64,000 nucleotides of DNA, taken from contig JBHGNT010000012.1 of NCBI GenBank assembly GCA_043228905.1, positions 6,138,001 to 6,202,000 on the forward strand, in the 5' to 3' direction. The stretch comes from Azolla caroliniana (taxonomy: Eukaryota; Plantae; Polypodiophyta). The stretch's first letter is position 1. Each line of letters begins with the position of its first letter. The position numbers were made by a program, and so were the translations under genes. Under the pieces are notes generated by a model that saw nothing but the letters and a program-made list of their open reading frames with translations, was not told the DNA's origin and did no database searches. Below, piece by piece: positions 314-62,470 of the stretch.

Positions 314-3094
314 ATGATCGGTGAAAGTCAACCTTCTCCTCCCATCTCCATCCCCGTAAGAAGCTCTACAGACAGCTCCTCCTCCACAGAAGCAAAAAGC
401 TCATCATCATCTTCCTTCGTCAGAGGTTTCTTCTTCAGCAATCACTCATCTCCTTCCTCAGATGCCGATAATCCTTTTCCTCCTCTCAACCCCTCCTATA
501 ACGCTGCTGACATTGTAGAGAGAGGCATCTCTGCTGCCGGTGCTGCCTTCTTTTCTGCTATCATTGTCAATCCATTGGATGTGGTCAAGGTTAGTGCGGC
601 TTATATCCCCTCCTTTCCCCCATTTTCCTTGCTAATTTCTGAACAAAGAAAATGCCAAGTGATATAATGCGGATGATGTATTATCATCCTCTGGAGACAC
701 GTAACTTGACCCGCTTGTCGTCTGTGTCTGGTTCTGGAAGAACATAAACAAGGATAGTTTCTGAGCAAATAATTGTCAAGAGTTATGATTTGGAGTTCAG
801 AACGTCTTGACAAATGGCCCAACCATCTTGATTTTCTGCGCATCTACCATTTCCTCAGGTTGATCTCACATTCTTGAGAGAGAAAGAGAGATCAACCTGA
901 GAAAACGAAGTTTAGACTTAACATCTACTAAAGGTGAAAAATGGCCTATCAGAGAAAAACTGTAACCATTGTTTGAAACACGAAACAAGTTCCAAATATA
1001 AGCTAAACAAAAAGGAAAGAGTGATAGCAGAGTTTGGAAACAAGAGTTCGAGTAACCATGTGCTCAGAGAAATGAAATGAAATGTTAAATTAATGTCTTC
1101 AAAATGACAAAGAAACCTCTGGGAGAAAAGTTACATCAAAGTCAATATCATGGGATGTGTAACAAAATTATACCAACTGTCCCTAAATTAGAGAGATAGA
1201 GAACGATGATGTGTTATCGTCCGCTGGGGGCCAAAGTGACCAATGATACCTCCAAGCTTTTACAAAGTAAGCTACCCAGAACTAATGGGGGGGGGAATTA
1301 GGAACAAAGATAAAATGAAATTAGAAATAAATGTGTATTATGGAATTCCAAGTATGCTTGCATTTGCCAATTGTAAACTGAGTTGAGTGCAAAATGCTAA
1401 CAACTGTGCAGCAAAGCTGCCCAAAACCATGAGTGAGGGGCTGCTCTTGGTAGCAGTTCCTGAAATGTGGTGCATTAATGTGGTGCTCATGAAAAGCATC
1501 TCTAATCTCATGATATCCTGGGCACAGCAAGGTCACATGTGCATTTCTGTTACATTTGCCTCTTCTCCTCATTATCCATCCATGCATTTCTATTTTCAGT
1601 GTGTGGGAAAGTGTACACATCAGTGTGATGGCATACCTTGCTCTCTTGGTCATGGTTGTTGGAATGTTCCCATTATTAAGGATACTATGATAGCAGTAGC
1701 CTTCAAACTTTGGGCTATGTTTAATGCTCTATGGTCTTTCAACATTCAAGAACTCCTCCATCATGTTCCACCATGCAAACCATGCATAGCGGGAGAATAT
1801 TTAGCATACTATACACTTAGAATATGTATGCTATGTATTCTAAAAATATTCTACTGTTTTTGTAAAAAAATATTTAGGATACATATTCTACAGATAAAAT
1901 ACATTAAATATGGAGAATATGTGTAGAATACGTTAAGTACTTCTTAAAATTTAAAGTTCAATTTCTTTGAAGGTTTTTGGAAATGTGAAATACTTGTTAA
2001 ATCCGTAGAATATGTGAAACATTTTTAAATGGAATTTCTAAGACTTAGAATAGTTCAGAGCATTCAGAAACTTACTCTCAACATAGAACACACGTTTTTT
2101 TAGCATTTATGAAACTGTGTCAAAAACCCAAACTGAAGAAAGAGCTTGCCTTTATGGTTCTTCTCTGGTTAATCTCCTATTTTCCATGCTATGCTAGGTA
2201 GGCAGAGCTAAGGCATAGAATCAACTTTCCAAAGGTACTTGTACACGCATTAAGAGGGCATACAATTACTGACAAAATCGTCCCTCTGGCTGGCATTCCC
2301 ACTTCAGATTGCAAAGCTTAAATTTGATTTACATCAAGTAGATAGACAGATTTCCTAGTTCCCATATCTTAAAACAAGATAAAATGTAAAATTCTATTAG
2401 CCTGCTTCTAATATGGGGTTGTGCTTTTATTTGAGGTTTTATTATACAGCAACAGAAAGACATGTTATGTCGCTTATAGAGCTGGCTGAAATACTTGCCC
2501 CTTATCGTGGCTTAATATAAAAGAGTTTGCAACACAAGCATAGATTGACACATGTGTGATTCGTGATATTCTCCATGCGTGATATTCACAATATTTGACA
2601 ATATGAAATGGCCCCAAGAATATTATAAAACCATTCATTTTGCAAAATAAATATAAAAAAAAAAATCATTTTTTGAAAAAACAATTAAAAAAATATTTAT
2701 TTCACTAAAAAAAGAACAGTCATTCATTAATAGATTATAAAAATATGATTAGTATTAAGTCTCCTTTATAGTGTCAAATAAAAAAGGAGCGTATAGTTAA
2801 GTTGTTGTAGTTAAAAAGCTCGTAGTTGGATCTCAGGGCGGGGTGAGCGGTCGCCTCTTTGGTGTGCACTGGTTGCTCCGCTCTTTCTGTCGGGGACGTG
2901 CACCTGTCCTTAACTGGTCGGGACGTGGATTCGGCGATGTTACTTTGAAAAAATTAGAGTGCTCAAAGCAAGCCTATGCTCTGAATACATTAGCATGGAA
3001 TAACGTGATAGGACTTTGGTCCTATTGTGTTGGTCTTTGGGACCGGAGTAATGATTAATAGGGACAGTTGGGGGCATTCGTATTTCATTGTCAG

Positions 3095-3126
<32 letters not shown>

Positions 3127-3127
3127 T

Positions 3128-3158
<31 letters not shown>

Positions 3159-6100
3159 AGTTTATGAACCTTTATTTTAATTAATGAAATAATTAATTAT
3201 TTAAAAAAAACGAATAATTTTATATTTATTATAGAAATGTGATTAGCGTGAAGTCCCATTTTTAATGTGAAATAAAAATATCCATAAAATTTGGAAGAAT
3301 AAAAAGTGGGGAATTAATGAACTTTTATTTTATTTTATTTATTTATTAAAAATAAAACGAATATCTTTACATTTATTATGAAAATTTATTAGTGTCAAGT
3401 CCCTTTTTTATTGTTCCGGTTTGATTGTGAACTTCCCTTTTTTATATCTAGGAAACTAAAAAGGAGGGACTTTATGAGCTCTCACCCTTTTTTTAACAAA
3501 TGCTTTTCATGCATTTGTATGCATTCGTTTGGGAACCCCCACGAATGTGAATATATCAATCAATGAACGCAAGTGATAGTTCTGTTCCAGCTGTGTCATG
3601 TTCAAGCTATGCATGCCTTAGGTCTTATTCACAATGTACACAACACTTGCGAATTAATATAAAAAGTGTGTTTTAGGCGGTGAACTTTATGGTGGGAAAT
3701 ATATACCTTTTTATGTTTTGGTTACTTGTTTATGTAGAGAGTAGATAGATGGTATAAAAAAGTAAAGAGATGAGAGAAGTGCACCATTGCGAAATAGTAA
3801 CACACACATTGCGATGAACTGCCATCCATAACATAGAAATCCCATTTTGCATTAAGATTAACATGGGAAGGACAATAGACTTCCTCATCATTAGTTAGAT
3901 TCTTTGCTGAGGAAATGTGGTCATACTTGGACTAGTTCACACTTGTGAAGGTTGAACTTAATGCCAACCACAGATTACTAGAGACACATTGTAGTTGACC
4001 CAAAAATTTCATAATGAGGACAACTTGTGCAACCTGATTTCTTTATGTAGCAACATTGAAGATGATGATTATATGGAGAATCATATCAATTATTTTCTTC
4101 AACATAGTTTTTAAAGTGTGGAGAGTCTAAATTTAATGTCATATTGAACATTAGAATTAGGAAACAATGGACCCTTATTAAATAACAACTCTCACATTTA
4201 TCAACTTTAACAATGCACAGCTGTATGAATTTCACAATGGACGTGCTTCATTATTCATAATAATCTACAGCTGAAATTCCATATTTGGAAACTTCAAGGA
4301 AGATATTGTCATGGAAGAATAAGTGCTGACAATCATAAACAGTTCTTTTTCTTACCTAAGCCTAGCAATGGGCACGGTTCGGTTTCAAGGCAAAGAAACC
4401 AAACCAAACCGTTTATTTAAAACAAATCCAAACCAAACTGTTTATTTAAAACCAAACCAAACCAAACCTGTTTATGAACTCTCAGTATTTAAACCAAACC
4501 ATTTAAGAAAAAGTTAAAACCAAGCCTTTTAAAACCAAACCGTTTAGGGAAAAGTTGAAACCAAACTGAACCATTTAATAAAAGTTTTTAACCTAACCAC
4601 TTAAGTCAAACTAGTTAAACATCGAAAGAAACAAAAATAAATTAAATTAAATAAGCATTTAAGTTAAATTTATTAAATCAATAAAAGAAACATTAATTGA
4701 ACCATTAAATTAAATAAACATTTAAGTTAAATTAATTAATCAATAAAAAACCATTACATCAATAAACTATTAAGGTAAAAAAAAAAGTTAACCAAAAACC
4801 TATAAACCTTTAAACCTTTAAACCAAACCTGTAAACCTGAGTTTTAGAACCAAACTGTTTATCGAGAATCCAAACCAAACCAAACCATTAACGTTTTTTG
4901 GAACCAATAAACCGTTAAACCATGGCTTTACGGTTCGGTTCGGTTTGAGCCGAAACCGTGCCCATTGCTACCAAAGCCCCCCAATACCAATATATGTCTT
5001 AACACTATTTGGGAACCTGGATCGAAAAAATTTCGCTCTATCCATGAATCTGCTACTGAAGTTGGAGTAGATTTGGATCTGTTGGAAGGATGGAACAATG
5101 TTCATGAATGCATATGTTTTGTGCTTGATTTCTTGGATACATTAACAGTAACCTTTTTCTATGATTATTATGCTGGATGGGTTTCATCACATATTCTCAC
5201 ATATAGCATATTCAAATGCTAGAAGCATGTGACATGTTTTCTTGTGAGTGAACTTTTTCTGCTATTTGTTGCATTATTGTTTGCATATTGTGACAATGTT
5301 CTTGTTGTTTATTTTATTTAGCTGCAAAGCATCACATCATACAAATAATTATTAAGCATCATAACTCTCGTTGATGACTCTGCTCAGTTCTTTGTGCGTT
5401 TCTTATATTGTTATATTGGATACAGACTAGACTTCAGGCGCAAGCTGCAAATGAACCATACCATCATCTAAGACATATATCTCTCAGTCCTGAGTTTGTG
5501 GTAAATATCAACTCTTGCATATTCTCAACATTTAATGACATTTTTAATGTGTGCTTGTTGATGCATGTGTCCAGCTACATGTGTTTGTTGCCATCTCTGT
5601 TTAATGGCTAGTTATACTGCTATAAAACTTTGTCATAACATTAACTTTTTGTTACCATTAAAAATCTCCTAAATCTTACACTTCTTGTTGACTTTGGCAA
5701 GTGTCCTCCTGTTTGTCCACGTGGTGGTGTATCTGGCATTGCCCCGTTATGTCCACCTAGTTGTTTCCGTTACAATAGCACATTTGATGTTTTTGACAAA
5801 ATTATACGACAGGTATGGTTGATGATTTATGTTCAGTATTCTTGTTTAGGCAACGTTCAGATTTCTCTTTTGAACTTTCGTACTCCATGATATCTAGGAG
5901 GGAGTTTTGAGACTCTGGAGAGGCACCAATGCTGGACTCGCACTTGCAGTGCCAACTGTAAGCATAAGCAATGTTGTAAACATTCACTAATATTTGACAT
6001 AAGTTGTAGTTTAGAGTTTCGTATATTTTTCAGGTTGGGATCTATCTGCCATGCTATGATTTGTTCCGTGATTGTCTTGAAGGATATGCTACAAACAACT

Positions 6101-20801: not shown

Positions 20802-20854
<53 letters not shown>

Positions 20855-21160
20855 GATGATTTATGATGTCATGATCATGATCATATATTAACATCCATGG
20901 GAGGCAATAGGACCTTCACAGATAGATAGATAGATAGATACATACATACATACATACATACATACATACATGGGTTTTATTATTGTATTTGGAGGTGAAA
21001 CATGGCTGATGATACCAAAAATATAACATTTTCATTTCCATGTAATACATGTGAAAGTGAGTAGCGACTCTCAATGTTCAAGAACTTTGCTAATAATGTC
21101 ACAATTGTGAGTGTACAACTGTGATTGTGAGAGAATGTGATCAACGGCAGAGCATTGTAT

Positions 21161-21198
<38 letters not shown>

Positions 21199-23003
21199 AT
21201 ATTTTTGTTGCAGATGAATTTAAACCAGCATCTATAGACACAACACGCCCTGGTACACTGTTTAAGAATGCAGAAAACAAAGTTACTGTTGATTTCTGCA
21301 ATAATCAAGCTGGTAAGCCCAAAGTTTCATTTCAAGGAAACAGTGAAGATTGCAGAGATCTCGATGGCGTAATTTTCTTTGATGGGAAGAGCTTTAGGTT
21401 GGAAAGATTGCATAAAGCTGTAAAGAGCCTACGACATGTAAGACTCCCTGGAGAGTCTTCAAATGCTAGCAGTAATGTGAGTGTTATGGGTAGTGGAGTA
21501 GCTTCAGCTGTGGAGTCAACAACATCGCCAGGTCATCTCAATGGAGGATTGATCTCGTCTAATCTTGGGTCCATTCCTTCTAATGTCAACGTAGAAAGGA
21601 TAAATCCTCTGGTATATTGTCTATCTCAGAAATCGTTTTTGGATCAATTCATCTAGCTGCTTGTTTATAGATAAACGAAAATGCTTTCATTATTTCCCCA
21701 TCTATAGCGTTTGTATCTGCTATTTGAGCAAGTAATCCCATTGTTTTTCAATGGAATAGGTGGTTTGAGTAAATTTAGGGGTTTGTTTTTCAATTTGATA
21801 GGTGGTTTGAGTAATTTTAGGGTCATTTTTGTTCCCTCTTATCTGTTTTGAGGTTTGAACTGGGGCATTAGGGGAATTGATGAAAACTCAGGGATGTTCA
21901 GATAAATGAAGAAAAACACAGGATATTGCAGAGCTTATTCTTTTGTTTATATTTGTACTGAAATTGCTCTAGACTTCTCATGTCATGATCTTGTTCTATG
22001 TAGGTTCAAATAGAGGAAATTCATGTTGGTCAAGCCACTCAAGCCGAAAATCCAGGTATTTCTTCCATCAGTAAGATATCAGCATCTTCTATGTGCCTAA
22101 ACTGGGGCATGCTGATGAAGTTGACTGTCTTGCATGTTATGAGCTGGATAATCCAATGTTTAAGATTGCCCAGATAGCTTTCATCTTTGTATGCCTATCT
22201 TTTATCTTATTATTACGATGCCTCTTTTTCCTGAGTTTAGTGGTTGTGATACATGGGAAAATTACCAAATATGCTGGTATGCATTAGATTTTCAAAAAGT
22301 ATGCTTGATTATTTTCAAAATTACACATATATGGTTGGTCAAAATTGAGGGTTCATGTCATTCGCAGCCTTGACTTTAAATTTCTACTACAGTCGGCATA
22401 AATTTCCTTATTTATATGTAAATAATGCTCTTAATGTTCTGCATTTTGCCAAATTCTTCTTCCATCGTATGGGACTAATACCAAGCTTTTCTTTTTGGTG
22501 CAGCTGAAAGGAAAATTATTAAAAGAAAGGCAGACACTACTGCAAAATTGACAGCAAAAGGAAAAATATCACCACCGGTAGCTGCAGTAGAATCACCACC
22601 ACTACCACCTATTGAAAACAAGTTTAATAATTATACTGAGGAGGTGCATGTGGAAATCGAGACAAATGAAGAAGAAGATGAGAAGTTAAAGAAACCAAAG
22701 GCATCAGAATCATTGCAAGCAGAAGTTAATATAGATGATGAGATTGTAAGTGACTATGAGATGATTGAGGATGTGGATGTGAGTGACGATGATGAAGGGG
22801 TGAATGCAGCAGAGGCACTAAGAGCTCAAGCAGCTGTCAATCAAAAGCAAGAAAGCTCAAGTGAGAGTAGTGGGAGCGGGAGCGGAAGTAGTGGTAGCGA
22901 GAGTGGAAGTGGGAGTGGAAGTGGAAGTAGTAGCAGCGGATCTGGGAGTGATGATGATGATGATGATGATGAAGACTCTGCGAGCTCAGCTGATGATATT
23001 TAA
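20151..23003 (+). CDS. EAF: ELL-associated factor (EAF) domain protein, Pol II elongation factor, 4 exons, about 357 aa
   Basis: Exons 20151-20274, 21214-21611, 22004-22055, 22504-23003 (GT-AG, 1074 nt open). EAF motifs WFPLSLGSSF, LRYEFKPASID, FQGNSED, IFFDGKSFRLERLH. Acidic Ser/Gly-rich C-terminus. Confidence 0.9.
20919..21160 (-). mobile_element. Short 3'-terminal fragment of the 13030-14595 LINE family in EAF intron 1
   Basis: TGTGAAAGTGAGTAG...ATGTTCAAGAACTTT...GGCAGAGCATTGTAT matches 13126-13288. (GATA)n(CATA)n tail. Confidence 0.8.
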
Positions 23004-38083: not shown

Positions 38084-38506
38084 TGTTACAGGCATGACCA
38101 TATAATATCCCGTAGTATTTTATACACGTGGATAAGTGTGAGGGTTAAACAAGAGTGTAAAGAAGGGGATGATTACTTTTAATCCTCGGATTGAGACAAC
38201 CCATTAGGCCAAGAGTGAACTTGCCTGGGGGCCTTGGGTATCGCTATAAATATGAGGCCTACCTACCCTCATTTCATCATATATCTCGACTTGGCCTAAT
38301 GGGAGGGTAGCTAGGCCTCATATTTATAGCGATACTCAAGGCCCCCATGCCAGTTCACACTTGGCCTAATGGGTTGTCTCAATCCCGAGGATTAAAAGTA
38401 ATCCTCCCCTTCTTTACACTCTCGTTTAACCCTGACACTTATCCACGTGTATAGAATACTACGGTAAATTCTCACCGCAGGATATTATATGGTCATGCCC
38501 GTAACA
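38084..38506. mobile_element. 423-bp fold-back element with TG...CA ends and 5-bp TSD
   Basis: Arms 38084-38270 and 38303-38506 are near-identical inverted repeats around a 32-nt loop. Ends are TGTTAC...GTAACA. CAAAC flanks both sides (38079-38083, 38507-38511). Confidence 0.88.
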
Positions 38507-55200: not shown

Positions 55201-57630
55201 GCTGTATTTTTTATTTGTATTTTGTGACAAAAATGTGTAAAATTTAAATCTATTTAATCAAAGCTTCTGCAATATAGAGAAAGAAATATGCTTTTAGCTT
55301 CTATGTCAGTGTTTTTGCAAATCGAGAAAGTATGAAAGGCATGCTACAACAATTTTGGGATGTAGAAGTGTTGTCAAATCTCTTATGCATTGAGTGATGG
55401 CTCAAATGGTGTTACGAGTTGTGTTTGATGATGGAATAGTCTAGTCTCTATCATTTTTATTCCCATTTCACTGTATAGATCATAAAATTCCATCCATGAT
55501 ACTCCTTGCATTTAGTTCTTATTTCTATGCAGTATTGCTGTTTATTATTATTTCATTGATGACTCTCATGTTTGATTATTTGCGATTTTCTGGTCACTCT
55601 TCAGTTTTTTGAGTTTGTTTTCTGGTATATGATGGTGATGCTCATCTTTTATTTTTTGAATTACTTTGTAATGAAAATGTTCAATAGCCAACAATAAATC
55701 AGTTTCATGTATTTCTTTTGTTTGATTAACATGTATCCATTCCCAGTTTGTGAGTTCTTCCCTATGCCCATTGCTTGGATTTTCTAACAGATTGGTTTCA
55801 GTGTGTTTATTTGCCAAACTTAACATTTAAATATCCAGTATGGATAAACAAACAATTAAAGCTGCAAAAAGCTTATTTTTATGGCTTTTGTTTTATATAT
55901 TTATTTTGATGGCCTCGTTTGAAAGAAATTATATTTGGGCCATGTAAACCTTTGGTGAAATATTATTAACAGGCCATTGCTCTTGATGGATATATATGTT
56001 CATGAATAAATTAGTTCTTCATTGAGTGTCCTTGTGATATCTCTTTCTCACTCTAATCTTCAACCGCGCCCTTGTCGAGGGTTTTCCACCACAATGGACC
56101 GTGAACACAGTGGCCCCTATACATAAAGGAGGGGACCCAATGGACCCAAATACATATAGGACCATTATGATAGGTCATATGCTCGCTAAACTATATGGTG
56201 TGGTAATGGAAGTGGAACTTAGTGATTATATGGAAACATTAAGTCTTCGAGCACATGAACAAGTTGGCTTTAGATGAGCCTTCTCCACTATTGACCGTAT
56301 CTTTACACTTAGGTGACTTTTGCAAAGCCTTTGACACAGTTCCTAGGGAGAAGTTGTTTGATAGACTTAAGATCTTGGAGATACCAAATGATATGATCTG
56401 GGCCATTATATATGAGCAAGTCTTTGGGTGCGTAAGATACCTAGGTGGCCTATACGATTGTTTCACTAGCACCATTGGTTTGAAACAGGGTTGCCCCCTA
56501 TCACTAACTCTTTTTGGGATCTACATTGACGAGATCATTGATTTTATTGCTCGTAAGGGAGGCAAGGGAGTAGCTATTGGGGATATGCAAGTTAGACTCT
56601 TACTCTACGCAGACGACATTGTCTTGCTCTCGGAGTCAGAACACGACCTACAAAAGCATCTTAATGCCCTAGATGACTTTTGTACGCAACAAGGATTGGT
56701 AGTGAATGTGGCGAAAACTAAAGTCCTTATCTTTCATATATCGTCCTGAGTTAGGAGTAAATATCACCTAATTCTCTCTCATAAACTAGTTGAGGTAGTT
56801 GGATCATATGTATACTTGGGAGTCACTTTTAGTGCTCGCTCAGGTAAATTCTCGATGACTTAGGTAGCCAAAGATAGGCCAACGAGAGGGTATGCATCCC
56901 TCTCACTCTTAGAGAGACAATGCCACAATGCATACTTTCAAGAGCCATGGACTAAGGGGATGGCTCTTCGACTCATTAGTAACCCCGTCCCTCATGTATG
57001 CATCAGTAGTATGGGCCCTAGGTTTACCATTTTTCATGTGGACGCAATTAGAGAGACCTTTGGTGACTATGTTATCACGTCAACTCCGAAGCAAATTGAC
57101 AGTACCACATGACATTATTAGAGTAGAGTTCAGTCTGCCCCCAATGTTAATAGAAGCACAGTTTCAAGTGGTAGATTTTATTCATCGAATACATAGCCAA
57201 CCACAAGATAGGATATCCTGTCGAGCCTTTGAGGCATCTCAATCCCTACATGCGTCGAGAGACACTAGCTCTTGGTATAGCATTGTGGTGAGTTGGTTAC
57301 TTGCAAACAACATAGACATTAATAACCTACCCCCCCTTAAGTACAACCATGGGACTGACTAAACTCTAATATCTCATGAAGACCGTAATAAAGTGATACG
57401 CCAAGGTGTCAAGATTCGAACTCTTGACATAGCCATGTTATAATTGAGTGTTATGTGTTAACCAAACATCTAGCATATAATCATGTATATACTTCCTCAT
57501 TGTAGGTTTTAGCTAGCATCATGTGCATAATTTCTCCCTTGTATTATTAACACTTGGCACATGCATGCGTACCTACTGCCTACATGCTCTATTGTATCAC
57601 ATGCGTGCAACAGGTATGCATGCCACTTAG

Positions 57631-57638
57631 TATAAATA
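57631..57638 (+). promoter_or_regulatory. TATA box of the 5' LTR (copy in 3' LTR at 58961-58968)
   Basis: TATAAATA starts 32 nt upstream of the predicted start A57663. Confidence 0.7.
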
Positions 57639-58029
57639 GTTGAGTTCATCTTGAAGGAATTCAAGGTGAACAACGCCAGTCATGGACATATCAATCTAGT
57701 ATTCCCATTTCGCCCATCCTCTCTCCTTGATCTTCATCTCTATCTTTATGCTCTTGTTCCTCGCGTCATCACTCCGTCATAGCCTCACCATCCGTGCTCT
57801 GTCTTAGTTCGCGCTTGGTGTGTCCATGACAGTTTGTTCACCTTCCAACTAGAAGCATCACCCGTCTCCGTCATCGCCTTTGCTTCTAGAGTTACCATCG
57901 TCACCATACCATCATCAACATCGCTTCATTTCCTATCTTCCTCGTCGTTTCTATCTCCTAGTTTCTTCTCATAATTTTCATTGGCTTTTAGTTCTCCTCA
58001 TCATTGTCTCTATTTTTTAGTTTCTTTCC

Positions 58030-58600
58030 CGTTCGTGTTCGTGTTCTAGTTCCCAGTGAGGGCCGCACAAGGCCGCTCACTCCCATTGGTGTTCGTGTTC
58101 CAGTTCCCGGTGAGGGCCGCATGGTCTCTCACGCCCGTTCGTATTCGAGTTCCCGGTGAGGGCCGCATGGTTGCTCACACCCATTCGTGTTCCAGTCTCC
58201 GGTGAGGGCCACATGGTCGCTCACTCTAGTTATTTTTCATGTTCCACATCCCGGCGGGGACCGACATGGTCACTCATGCCCATTGCGGCTCATGTTCCAG
58301 TTCCCCGTGAGGACCCCACATGGTTACTCATGCCCCTTGGTGTTCATGCCCCCCGTGAGGACCACACATGGTCGCTCATGCTCGTTGTTGTTCATGTTCC
58401 AGTTCCCAGTGAGGACCACACATGGTCGATTACTCCAACTCTCAGCGAGGACCGTTGGTTCATGCCCGTTGGTGTTCGTGTTCCAACTCTCAGCGAGGAC
58501 CGTTCCAGTTCCCGGCAAGGACCCCACATGGTTACTCATGCCCCTTGGTGTTCATGCTCCCCGTGAGGACTGCACATGGTTGCTCATGCCCATTGGTGTT
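58030..58600. repeat. About 12 diverged 45-55-bp tandem units inside the LTR element
   Basis: Approximate unit GTTCRTGTTCCAGTTCCCGGTGAGGRCCRCATGGTYGCTCAYGCCCATTG. Confidence 0.88.
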
Positions 58601-60299
58601 AAATACGTCATCTTGTGGAAGGGTTACTCCTTGTCTAGGATTTACAAAATACTTTGGAGGTGATCTAAGATTTTCATCAACAATATCCCCTTAAGTTGGC
58701 AAACGATTTGGAAAGGCATCGTTGGAGGGGGGATAATGTCAAGATTCGAACTCTTGACATAGCCATGTTATAATTGAGTGTTATGTGTTAACCAAACATC
58801 TAGCATATAATCATGTATATACTTCCTCATTGTAGGTTTTAGCTAGCATCATGTGCATAATTTCTCCCTTGTATTATTAACACTTGGCACATGCATGCGT
58901 ACCTACTGCCTACATGCTCTATTGTATCACATGCGTGCAACAGGTATGCATGCCACTTAGTATAAATAGTTGAGTTCATCTTGAAGGAATTCAAGGTGAA
59001 CAACGCCAGTCATGGACATATCAATCTAGTATTCCCATTTCGCCCATCCTCTCTCCTTGATCTTCATCTCTATCTTTATGCTCTTGTTCCTCGCGTCATC
59101 ACTCCGTCATAGCCTCACCATCCGTGCTCTGTCTTAGTTCGCGCTTGGTGTGTCCATGACACAAGGAATATGGCAGATTTACACTCGATATAAATGGATC
59201 ATCCCACGAGAGCCACTCCCATCTAAAATGTTGTACTATAAGGAACACTTCTTGCACTTCTCTTAGTTAGGTTTTATTACACGACCAAGATATCTAGATA
59301 CATGAATCTTATCAAATGCACCAAGGGTAGCCATTGGACAACTTGGGATATCATCTCACCAACTTGAGATTGAGAATGGCCGGGCTAATAGAGTTCCTAG
59401 GGAGGAAAGGCTATGTAGGTTGTGCCTCATATTGATAGAGGATGAGTATCACTTCACATGCAATTGCCCAACTTATGCCGAGATACGAGTGGAATACTAA
59501 GACATATTAGGACCCTCTCCCACCCTCTCCAAACTATTAGATACCCCAGATATAAAGAGAGTAGGTATGTATATCTTAGAGTTAAAACAACATAGGGAGA
59601 ATAAATTACAAAGTATTAACCATAACCCTTTTACTATTCATCAACTTGTAACTAGTGTAATTTTTCAGGATCAAGGGGAGACAATGAATATGGATACACT
59701 TACGCCGCTCAACCTCTCTCTTGAGGAAGCTGAAACGCAAAGAACAACCAAACGCCCTTGGATGTTGGGCTTCAAAACAAGTCGACACGGAGTAGAAAGG
59801 ATTAAGAAGATAAGGGAATGTGAGCTACGTCGACTAGAAGCTATGGTTGGGGTACTTTTTACATTGGGGCCACGAGCCACATCCACATCAAAACCTTTTG
59901 ACCTCCTGCTTCTCTTCGAGAGACTTGGATGGAAATGAAATTAGGCCTAGTATAACATCATTTTCATTGTAGAACATGTTTGCTATTTTATTTTACTAGC
60001 ACTATTTAGCTTAAAACTCTATTTTTATTTTTATTTTTTACTTTCGATGAATGGGCAAATATCCCATTTTTTGTTGTAAACCATTTGTCTCATGGACCAA
60101 TTTTGGCCTTAGAAGACGTTAATATATCTTTCTTTCTTTCTCTCTAAAGTTAGCATGGAGACAACTCAAGGGAAATAAAGGAAAGATATAATTTATATGG
60201 AACAATATGTATGAAACATGTATGCTTACAACATGAGAGTATTGAAATTGATGATATAATGCTTATGACATTTAAGAGGTGGGAGATATGGTTGAGGCT

Positions 60300-60944: not shown

Positions 60945-62470
60945 AGGGTCACATGCAACAACATTTGGTCAAGCATATCTCGAAGACACTAATCAAATGG
61001 ACTAGACAACCATTATCTTGGAATCCACATGTGCGAACAAGTGACAACATGATGATAGGGAAGCCAAGGGCCTGTCGCGGGGAAAGCTGGTGCAAACAAG
61101 CGTCCATTCAACAGGTGATTGGAGACGCACAATGGCTTTGGGAGGGGTGAGGGAAGACCTAGTCCCTCCCCTCAAGGGACCTAAGAAAATGCGAAGATTG
61201 ATAATAGAGGCGGTTGACAAGGTTCAAGTGGGGGATGCGAGAGGAGATACATGGCTCAGTCTTTTTGATAGGGTTGGAACGATTAATCTGTGGATTTGGA
61301 AGGGCTACATTATTTGGGGAGAGCCAGCGTAGTGGCAGTTGACACTTGATCTGCGTGGTGGCGCAGGCTGGCAACAATTGGAAGACACACCTTGACATTG
61401 CTACGATGAACCCCCCGGAAGTTATCAGTCTATGGTAATTGCCCCCTCGTGGAACTAAAATGGAACCCAAGGGATTTCAGGTGGAAACACAACGGTAGAC
61501 TATGAACACTAAATTAGACTGAGCTATACAAATGCAGCGGGAAGGTCCCCTATGAAATGGCTAGCGGACATTGGGCATCTCTGACGAGGTGCTCGATACC
61601 TTTTGGAAGGGTCTCTGGTGTCTCCACGTGGCGGAGAAGATCAAGCTATTTTGGTGGCAGATTAACCATAAAGTGGTCCCTGTTGGTGAATGGCTAGGTA
61701 AACGAGGAGGCGTGATAGCTTGCCCACTCTGTTTTGCATCTATTGAGACTCTAAGACACTATTTGTGGGATTGGCCTCAAGCTCAAAGGGTCTGGGACAG
61801 GGTGACTCACCTCCTTGCTACTTGCGAAGTGGAGGGGACAACATCGTGGAGCACAATGGCCTGGATCATTCCCTCGGTTGATTGTTGGATGAGCTCCTTC
61901 AACGTAGGCAATTGGTGCTATGAATGCAAAAGAGGTAAACTTGTCAAGACCCATTTTTTGAAGACCGCATCCCCTCGTTTCTGGGAGATTTGGATGTTGA
62001 TCGCAAGTTTCACCCTTTGGTATGTGTGGCAAACACGTCTTCCAAGATTTGCTACACCCCTCAGAGGACATGGATATTTGGTTCACAATTATCAAATACT
62101 TACGAAGGTAGTTGGATGAGGTTTGCAACCATTTCAACGACATGGTCACTGCTCACTTACGCTTTTGGGAGAAATGGAGGAACACACCGATGGTGATGCA
62201 AGGAGGAAATGGCCCAAGGTGGAACTACCAACCCCCACACTAGCTGTTTTCTACTCAGAAGGCCAGAGGGTTGAACTCATACTGGCTGATGATGATTGCC
62301 ACTAGTTTATAGCTTTAGATACCAACTTACATTAAGTAGAAGGTAAGAGAGGATGCGTACGTAGAGTCATATTCGTGAACTTAGCCGGGGGTGATTCCTC
62401 GACTTATATACTTGCACAGTCTTTCTGTAAAAATCTCTCCTAACTAATGGGAAAGTAGCTCCTTTTTTGG
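60945..62470 (+). mobile_element. 3' fragment of an L1-type LINE with zf-RVT domain
   Basis: FWKGLWCLHVAEKIKLFWWQI...CPLC...ETLRHYLWDW...VW, then LWYVW. Stops and frameshifts on either side. Confidence 0.85.

Follow-up and report, generated by a model that had tools for sequence, protein, structure and literature searches.

We identified a long terminal repeat (LTR) element of 1755 bp at positions 57407-59161 of the window, the whole stretch of 64,000 nucleotides analysed here (contig JBHGNT010000012.1, positions 6,138,001 to 6,202,000), which carries the signature of self-primed reverse transcription known from the retrotransposon Tf1. We read it as a recent insertion of a non-autonomous element derived by deletion from a Tf1/sushi-group (Tcn1-like) self-priming chromovirus in a fern-lineage genome, and put the probability of this reading at about 0.8. 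An 11-mer of the 5' LTR, 57663-57673, is the exact reverse complement (11 of 11 letters) of 57834-57844, the proposed primer binding site (PBS). The PBS begins 2 nt past the end of the 5' LTR, after a GT, and the TGG of tRNA sites is absent. The proposed primer starts 32 nt downstream of the start of a TATA box at 57631. Beside the primer helix, a second helix of 10 bp can form between 57679-57688 and the U5 end (57821-57830), which are exact reverse complements of each other. An earlier reading made from the sequence alone (the sequence-only reading) had claimed the missing TGG-type PBS, both complementarities and the 32-nt spacing, and all of them proved to be exact.

Chance is excluded as the origin of the primer-PBS match in the window copy, since an 11-nt match to the bases directly past the LTR arose in none of 5000 dinucleotide-shuffled LTRs (one reached 10 nt) and no other 11-mer of the 905-bp internal region is complementary to the LTR. 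Folding of the RNA of 57663-57850 yielded -45.5 kcal/mol compared to -27.3 kcal/mol for shuffled sequences (z -5.4; 0 of 200 shuffles). The minimum free energy (MFE) structure contains the two helices expected by the sequence-only reading, together with a 2-bp bridge to the GT spacer. A conserved motif that follows the primer showed no enrichment elsewhere in the window.

Relatives of the element were recovered from public assemblies in three ways. A scan of metagenome contigs for the exact pattern of U5 end plus PBS gave four real relatives (L003-L006), as well as a chance match without LTR features (L002). A search with the open reading frame (ORF) of the internal tandem array gave L007-L010, and a comparison of the gag of L004 with protein representatives gave L011-L017, from which L016 and L017 were set aside as lacking the required LTR part. 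The contig L001 is 99.0% identical to window positions 20826-22654, indicating that the host or a near relative is present in its sample series. That series also contains L008, a copy of the window family with 87-93% identity. No additional copies of the element are present within the 64-kb window. L007 has the same PBS and leader (880-920), lacks a recognisable primer or TATA box upstream and carries two C-to-T changes at its LTR end; it may be an old or rearranged copy. In L004 (minus strand, approximately 200-830), which has the primer and PBS of the window copy, the N-terminus of gag runs directly into RNase H pieces with stops, making it one more derivative in this lineage that carries an internal deletion.

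In three diverged LTR families, consisting of the window copy and L008, of L006, and of L004, L005 and L011, primer and PBS have stayed the same, and the TATA box, U5 end and GT spacer are kept as well. The distance between TATA box and primer is exactly 32 nt in six LTRs of these families, while the remainder of U5 is 90 to 161 nt long and carries many substitutions. In four further families (L013, L014, L015 and L012) these two places are occupied by other primer/PBS pairs; in total, five families bearing gag and pol and one variant sub-lineage each have a different pair. L013, L014 and L015 remain in register in the MAFFT alignment, and the spacer of L012 is shifted. The spacer length is 2 nt in all families (GT in 8 of 10 loci). 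In every family the primer begins with a purine that follows a pyrimidine, as is usual for an initiator dinucleotide, and this together with the TATA spacing suggests that transcription starts at A57663.

To quantify covariation, the stated structure (23 pairs) was scored on an alignment designated A3. In this alignment 91.7% of the cells are paired, compared to 31-43% when the 3' partner is slid by 1-3 columns, and 13 of the 23 pairs have changed on both sides; none of 500 shuffles reached any of the observed measures. Among the 11 primer pairs, eight show compensatory changes and none a one-sided change. The second helix is held more loosely among the relatives, with wobble pairs, double changes and some mismatches. 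Covariation across families thus supports the Tf1-style self-priming signature which the sequence-only reading had proposed for a non-autonomous LTR element. The same behaviour is seen in a variant sub-lineage, in which four primer letters are changed (contigs of two organisms) and four PBS letters are changed such that they are exactly complementary to the variant primer (34 records of one organism). The 3' LTR of L009 carries the variant primer, and its U5 end matches the U5 end that is joined to the variant PBS.

The element retains a relic of the gene end expected of a chromovirus. Its internal tail contains one frame with a chromo-box-like W-K-G-Y stretch; a second piece follows beyond a frame change and a stop. 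Pfam searches with the two short pieces gave no match, and homology was established by alignment instead: the tail aligns to the chromodomain region of L011 with a 22-nt gap, and the two translated pieces match the expected successive parts of the L011 chromodomain. L011 shows the order chromodomain end of pol, polypurine tract, whole LTR, PBS, gag and pol in a -1 overlapping frame, a layout which is usual when an assembler collapses two LTRs. L011 and the window copy agree in primer, PBS and LTR tips, and their polypurine tracts end on the same nine letters. The pol of L014 is organized as reverse transcriptase (RT), RNase H (RH), integrase (INT), SH3 and Chromo. The chromovirus order of protease (PR), RT, RH and INT followed by a C-terminal chromodomain was found in L014, L013 and L011, the window copy having the relic only. 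The chromodomains of L014, L013 and L011 have Y/W, W and Y at the three aromatic positions, which is the classical group I type, and the window relic retains the W and the Y. The pol frame overlaps gag in the -1 frame in L011, L014 and L015, and L012 has a single frame. A Ty3-type gag is present in relatives that share primer and PBS with the window copy. These sequence comparisons support a chromovirus as the parent of the element. Placement of the parent lineage in the Tcn1 clade would fit its chromodomain type and predicted priming mode. In the protein atlas the L014 pol and the L011 gag have Basidiomycota and sushi-type Chordata clusters as neighbours instead of the clusters typical of plants, which we treat as a lead only.

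The LTRs (57407-57831 and 58737-59161) are 425 bp each with 0 differences; their identity breaks off exactly at both borders and their ends are TG..CA. Sequence comparison bore out the sequence-only reading in describing identical 425-bp LTRs, a CAAGG target site duplication (TSD), a polypurine tract and no coding capacity. The internal region of 905 bp consists of a leader, a tandem array and a short tail. Neither of the two ORFs that cross the array matched Pfam, and the repeat period there (46-54 nt) is no multiple of three; the element is therefore taken as non-coding. The features of the element are as follows.

57402-57406, no strand: TSD CAAGG, 5' copy, delimited by empty-site joints in paralogous copies of the flank.
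57407-57831, plus strand: 5' LTR (U3-R-U5), 425 bp, TG..CA, delimited by identity to the 3' LTR that ends exactly at the borders.
57407-57430 and again 58737-58760, plus strand: short palindrome TGTCA..TGACA at the start of U3, with a similar hairpin in L013, L014 and L009.
57631-57638, plus strand: TATA box TATAAATA of the LTR promoter, 32 nt before 57663.
57663-57673, plus strand: proposed self-primer, the putative first 11 nt of R with a C|A initiator, an exact complement of the PBS that covaries with it.
57679-57688, plus strand: 5' arm of the second helix, exact complement of 57821-57830, present in the MFE structure.
57821-57830, plus strand: 3' arm of the second helix at the U5 end, complement of 57679-57688, present in the MFE structure.
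57832-57833, plus strand: GT spacer between LTR end and PBS, pairing with 57675-57676 in the fold.
57834-57844, plus strand: PBS for the element's own 5' end, without TGG tRNA signature, exact complement of 57663-57673.
57845-58021, plus strand: non-coding leader, resembled only by L007 and L008.
58022-58600, plus strand: tandem array of approximately ten units of 46-54 bp, common to three non-autonomous subfamilies.
58598-58723, plus strand: relic of the chromodomain-coding 3' end of pol, with a frame change, a stop and a 22-nt gap compared to L011.
58724-58736, plus strand: polypurine tract, identical to that of L011 in its last nine letters.
58737-59161, plus strand: 3' LTR, identical to the 5' LTR.
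59162-59166, no strand: TSD CAAGG, 3' copy, matching the 5' copy.

The tandem unit of 50 bp is kept in three non-autonomous subfamilies with different LTRs, one of which has the variant primer (window 58022-58600; L007 1198-1375 and 2112-2286; L009 219-408). The length of the array differs among copies, as seen from many internal joints in contigs. The array is no more structured than its shuffles upon folding, and no structural role is claimed for it. The hairpin TGTCA..TGACA at the start of U3 lies directly after the polypurine tract in L013 (approximately 1075-1095), L014 (approximately 3157-3180) and L009 (485-505). Its stem letters differ between families of self-priming LTRs, and it may have a role in plus-strand priming or integrase recognition.

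Logan contigs of four runs, representing three coded organisms, were compared with the element. Thousands of contigs per DNA run fall on the element and approximately a tenth of these are at least 99% like the copy. In contigs from paralogues of the flanking repeat, 57401 is directly followed by 59162; this is the empty site, and it confirms the insertion boundaries.

Taken together, these features suggest how the element could be copied. It has lost gag and pol and retains every cis signal required for copying by the proteins of autonomous relatives, namely the LTR promoter, the LTR tips TGTCA..TGACA, the polypurine tract and the self-priming module. RNA polymerase II would start at A57663, 32 nt past the TATA box, and the first 11 nt of the RNA would fold back onto the PBS, 2 nt past U5, with the 10-bp helix between 57679-57688 and the U5 end holding the primer on the PBS. 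RNase H of a helper element would cut after nucleotide 11, as shown for Tf1, and the freed 3' end of the primer would prime minus-strand DNA that is extended through U5 and R. The usual strand transfers would follow, the polypurine tract would prime the plus strand, and the integrase would trim the two extra bases beside the CA. As the plus-strand strong-stop DNA would copy the primer, a primer change may be written into the PBS of the progeny. Copying of the primer into the PBS, as expected from the standard scheme, could account for the perfect pairing in every family.

Several observations weigh against this reading. L011 shares only approximately 59% of the LTR body with the window copy, and no autonomous element with the LTR body of the window copy was found among the recovered relatives. 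As to the autonomous Ty3/gypsy element that the sequence-only reading proposed to look for, L011 is a relative of autonomous type that shares LTR tips, primer and PBS. The runs that were guessed to be RNA yielded contigs only and were uninformative on the start site. The variant primer and the variant PBS were seen on separate short contigs and not on one molecule. The pairs of L013-L015 were found through inverted matches and their perfect pairing is partly ascertained; the position of these pairs relative to the independently aligned conserved flanking motifs is free of this ascertainment.

The long-range pairing could be real and selected and nevertheless serve cyclisation, packaging, dimerisation or strand transfer, with a different true primer. 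Ty1 has pairing between its 5' end and its PBS region around a tRNA primer, the covariation shows that pairing is kept and not what it is used for, and the second helix with its 2-bp bridge suggests a larger structure. We consider this explanation improbable, as there is no alternative PBS candidate past the LTR, TGG is absent, and the paired block lies exactly 2 nt past the LTR, the position that a primer needs if the ends of the LTR are to be made correctly. Moreover, its partner begins where the RNA should start, as in Tf1 (PMC7175516), and self-priming has already been predicted for related clades (PMC6317226). Half-tRNA primers are known in plant copia lineages (PMC6317226), and a host tRNA, tRNA half or other small RNA complementary to 57834-57844 might accordingly prime, the match to the LTR being secondary. 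Each of at least six different PBS sequences is matched by the LTR that belongs to it, and a different host RNA would be needed for each of them; with no TGG, no tRNA in the window and, at E up to 1, no Rfam match within the element, in a comparison that did not extend to the full set of host tRNAs, priming by a host RNA is very improbable.

Descent from the Ty1/copia lineage TAR instead of a chromovirus can hardly be credited. TAR elements are predicted to be self-priming in 89% of cases and occur in vascular plants, but a chromodomain relic precedes the polypurine tract of the window copy, and relatives that share its primer and PBS combine a gag of Ty3 type with the pol order RT-RH-INT-Chromo, which already contradicts such a descent. 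It is also improbable that the copy is not young and that its identical LTRs stem from assembly collapse or gene conversion. The abundance of the family, with its thousands of contigs per DNA run, makes collapse possible; on the other hand, a clean insertion would leave just such sharp borders and such a perfect 5-bp duplication, and the near-identical copies that make up approximately a tenth of the contigs on the element indicate recent activity regardless of any collapse of the LTRs. We favour a young, self-priming chromovirus derivative. A wider proposal, namely that self-priming Tcn1-like chromoviruses are active in the fern lineage beyond their moss and clubmoss range, with an abundant, mobile, gene-less family that switches primer and PBS together, and with fungal nearest protein neighbours pointing to possible horizontal transfer, is tentative and on present evidence rather unlikely to hold in full.

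Intron-free ORFs of the window have their best matches among fern proteins (Adiantum 63%, Ceratopteris 59-63%; 59-65% identity over two protein searches), compared to 49-54% for proteins of gymnosperms, clubmosses, mosses and liverworts. The host is accordingly taken to be a plant of the fern lineage, and a moss host is not favoured by these matches; that it might be a water fern, as the many leaf and plant metagenomes with related sequences would allow, is a guess. The element is inserted in a very high-copy repeat (57300-57405 and 59162-59300) with a contig depth approximately ten times that of the element. ORFs on the same strand nearby encode a LINE-type reverse transcriptase (56255-56746) and a zf-RVT domain (61571-62116). 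Further away, window positions 2799-3174 match part of the eukaryotic small-subunit rRNA (model positions 607-1116, 190 bits) and probably represent a fragment. At 38084-38506 a near-perfect palindrome of 423 bp, with arms that are 93-96% complementary, TG..CA ends and CAAAC on both sides, has TATA boxes pointing toward its centre; it looks like two LTR pieces, each from U3 to start site, placed head to head.

The analysis reveals no new mechanism. Tf1 evidence for co-change of primer and PBS came from engineered mutants. The families described here provide a natural test of self-priming, since many of them and one sub-lineage within a genome change primer and PBS together. The results further indicate that the host range of self-priming chromoviruses likely extends to a fern-like plant and that the self-priming module is enough to keep a gene-less parasite mobile. 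LTR finders that require a tRNA PBS will miss or misclassify such families. The sequence-only reading had implied that independence of tRNA in a plant would be novel; this is not new in itself, since it was predicted earlier for Tcn1 and TAR elements (PMC6317226). What is new is the abundant young non-autonomous family and the natural covariation evidence, together with, probably, the fern-lineage host. No described non-autonomous self-priming LTR element was found in the literature, which is weak evidence of absence.

Compared to known systems, the element resembles in its priming signals Tf1 of Schizosaccharomyces pombe (Tf1/sushi group), in which the RNA's first 11 bases anneal to the PBS, with RNase H cutting between base 11 and base 12 (reviewed in PMC7175516). 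Both have an 11-nt RNA 5' end (the predicted one in the element) complementary to a PBS just past U5, a further stem beside the primer helix, no tRNA PBS and a Ty3/gypsy parentage with a classical chromodomain. The element differs from Tf1 in its plant host, in being a gene-less copy and in its unrelated primer sequence, and its cut and start sites are predicted by analogy and promoter spacing. With non-autonomous plant LTR elements such as TRIMs (terminal-repeat retrotransposons in miniature) it shares a non-coding interior with PBS and polypurine tract, a high copy number and presumed mobilisation in trans. TRIMs have LTRs of roughly 100-250 bp and a total length of about 1 kb or less. The miniature label given in the sequence-only reading suits the interior and is loose as to size, since LTRs of 425 bp and a total of 1755 bp are larger than is usual for TRIMs. 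In addition, the PBS is a self-primer site instead of a tRNA-Met site, and the interior consists of a tandem array and a chromodomain relic.

In plants, 12% of the surveyed LTR retrotransposons were predicted to self-prime (Neumann et al., 2019; PMC6317226), the predicted self-primers being Tcn1 chromoviruses (83% of elements) and the copia lineage TAR (89%; PMC6317226). The element resembles the copia TAR lineage (Houba, Osr-1) in predicted self-priming in vascular plants, but TAR belongs to the other superfamily, lacks a chromodomain and has the copia gene order. Tcn1 elements were described from mosses and clubmosses only, 60% with overlapping gag/pol frames and with a group I/II chromodomain (PMC6317226); group I chromodomains in plants are those of Tcn1, Chlamyvir and two Selaginella elements (PMC3350952). 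Like Tcn1, the lineage described here is predicted to self-prime and makes a 5-bp duplication, and it has a group I chromodomain and overlapping gag/pol frames, the latter in the relatives L011, L014 and L015. Tcn1 was not detected by PCR in ferns or horsetails (Novikova et al., 2010; PMC2864245), and it is in its fern-lineage host that the element differs from the Tcn1 clade, to which its parent may belong.

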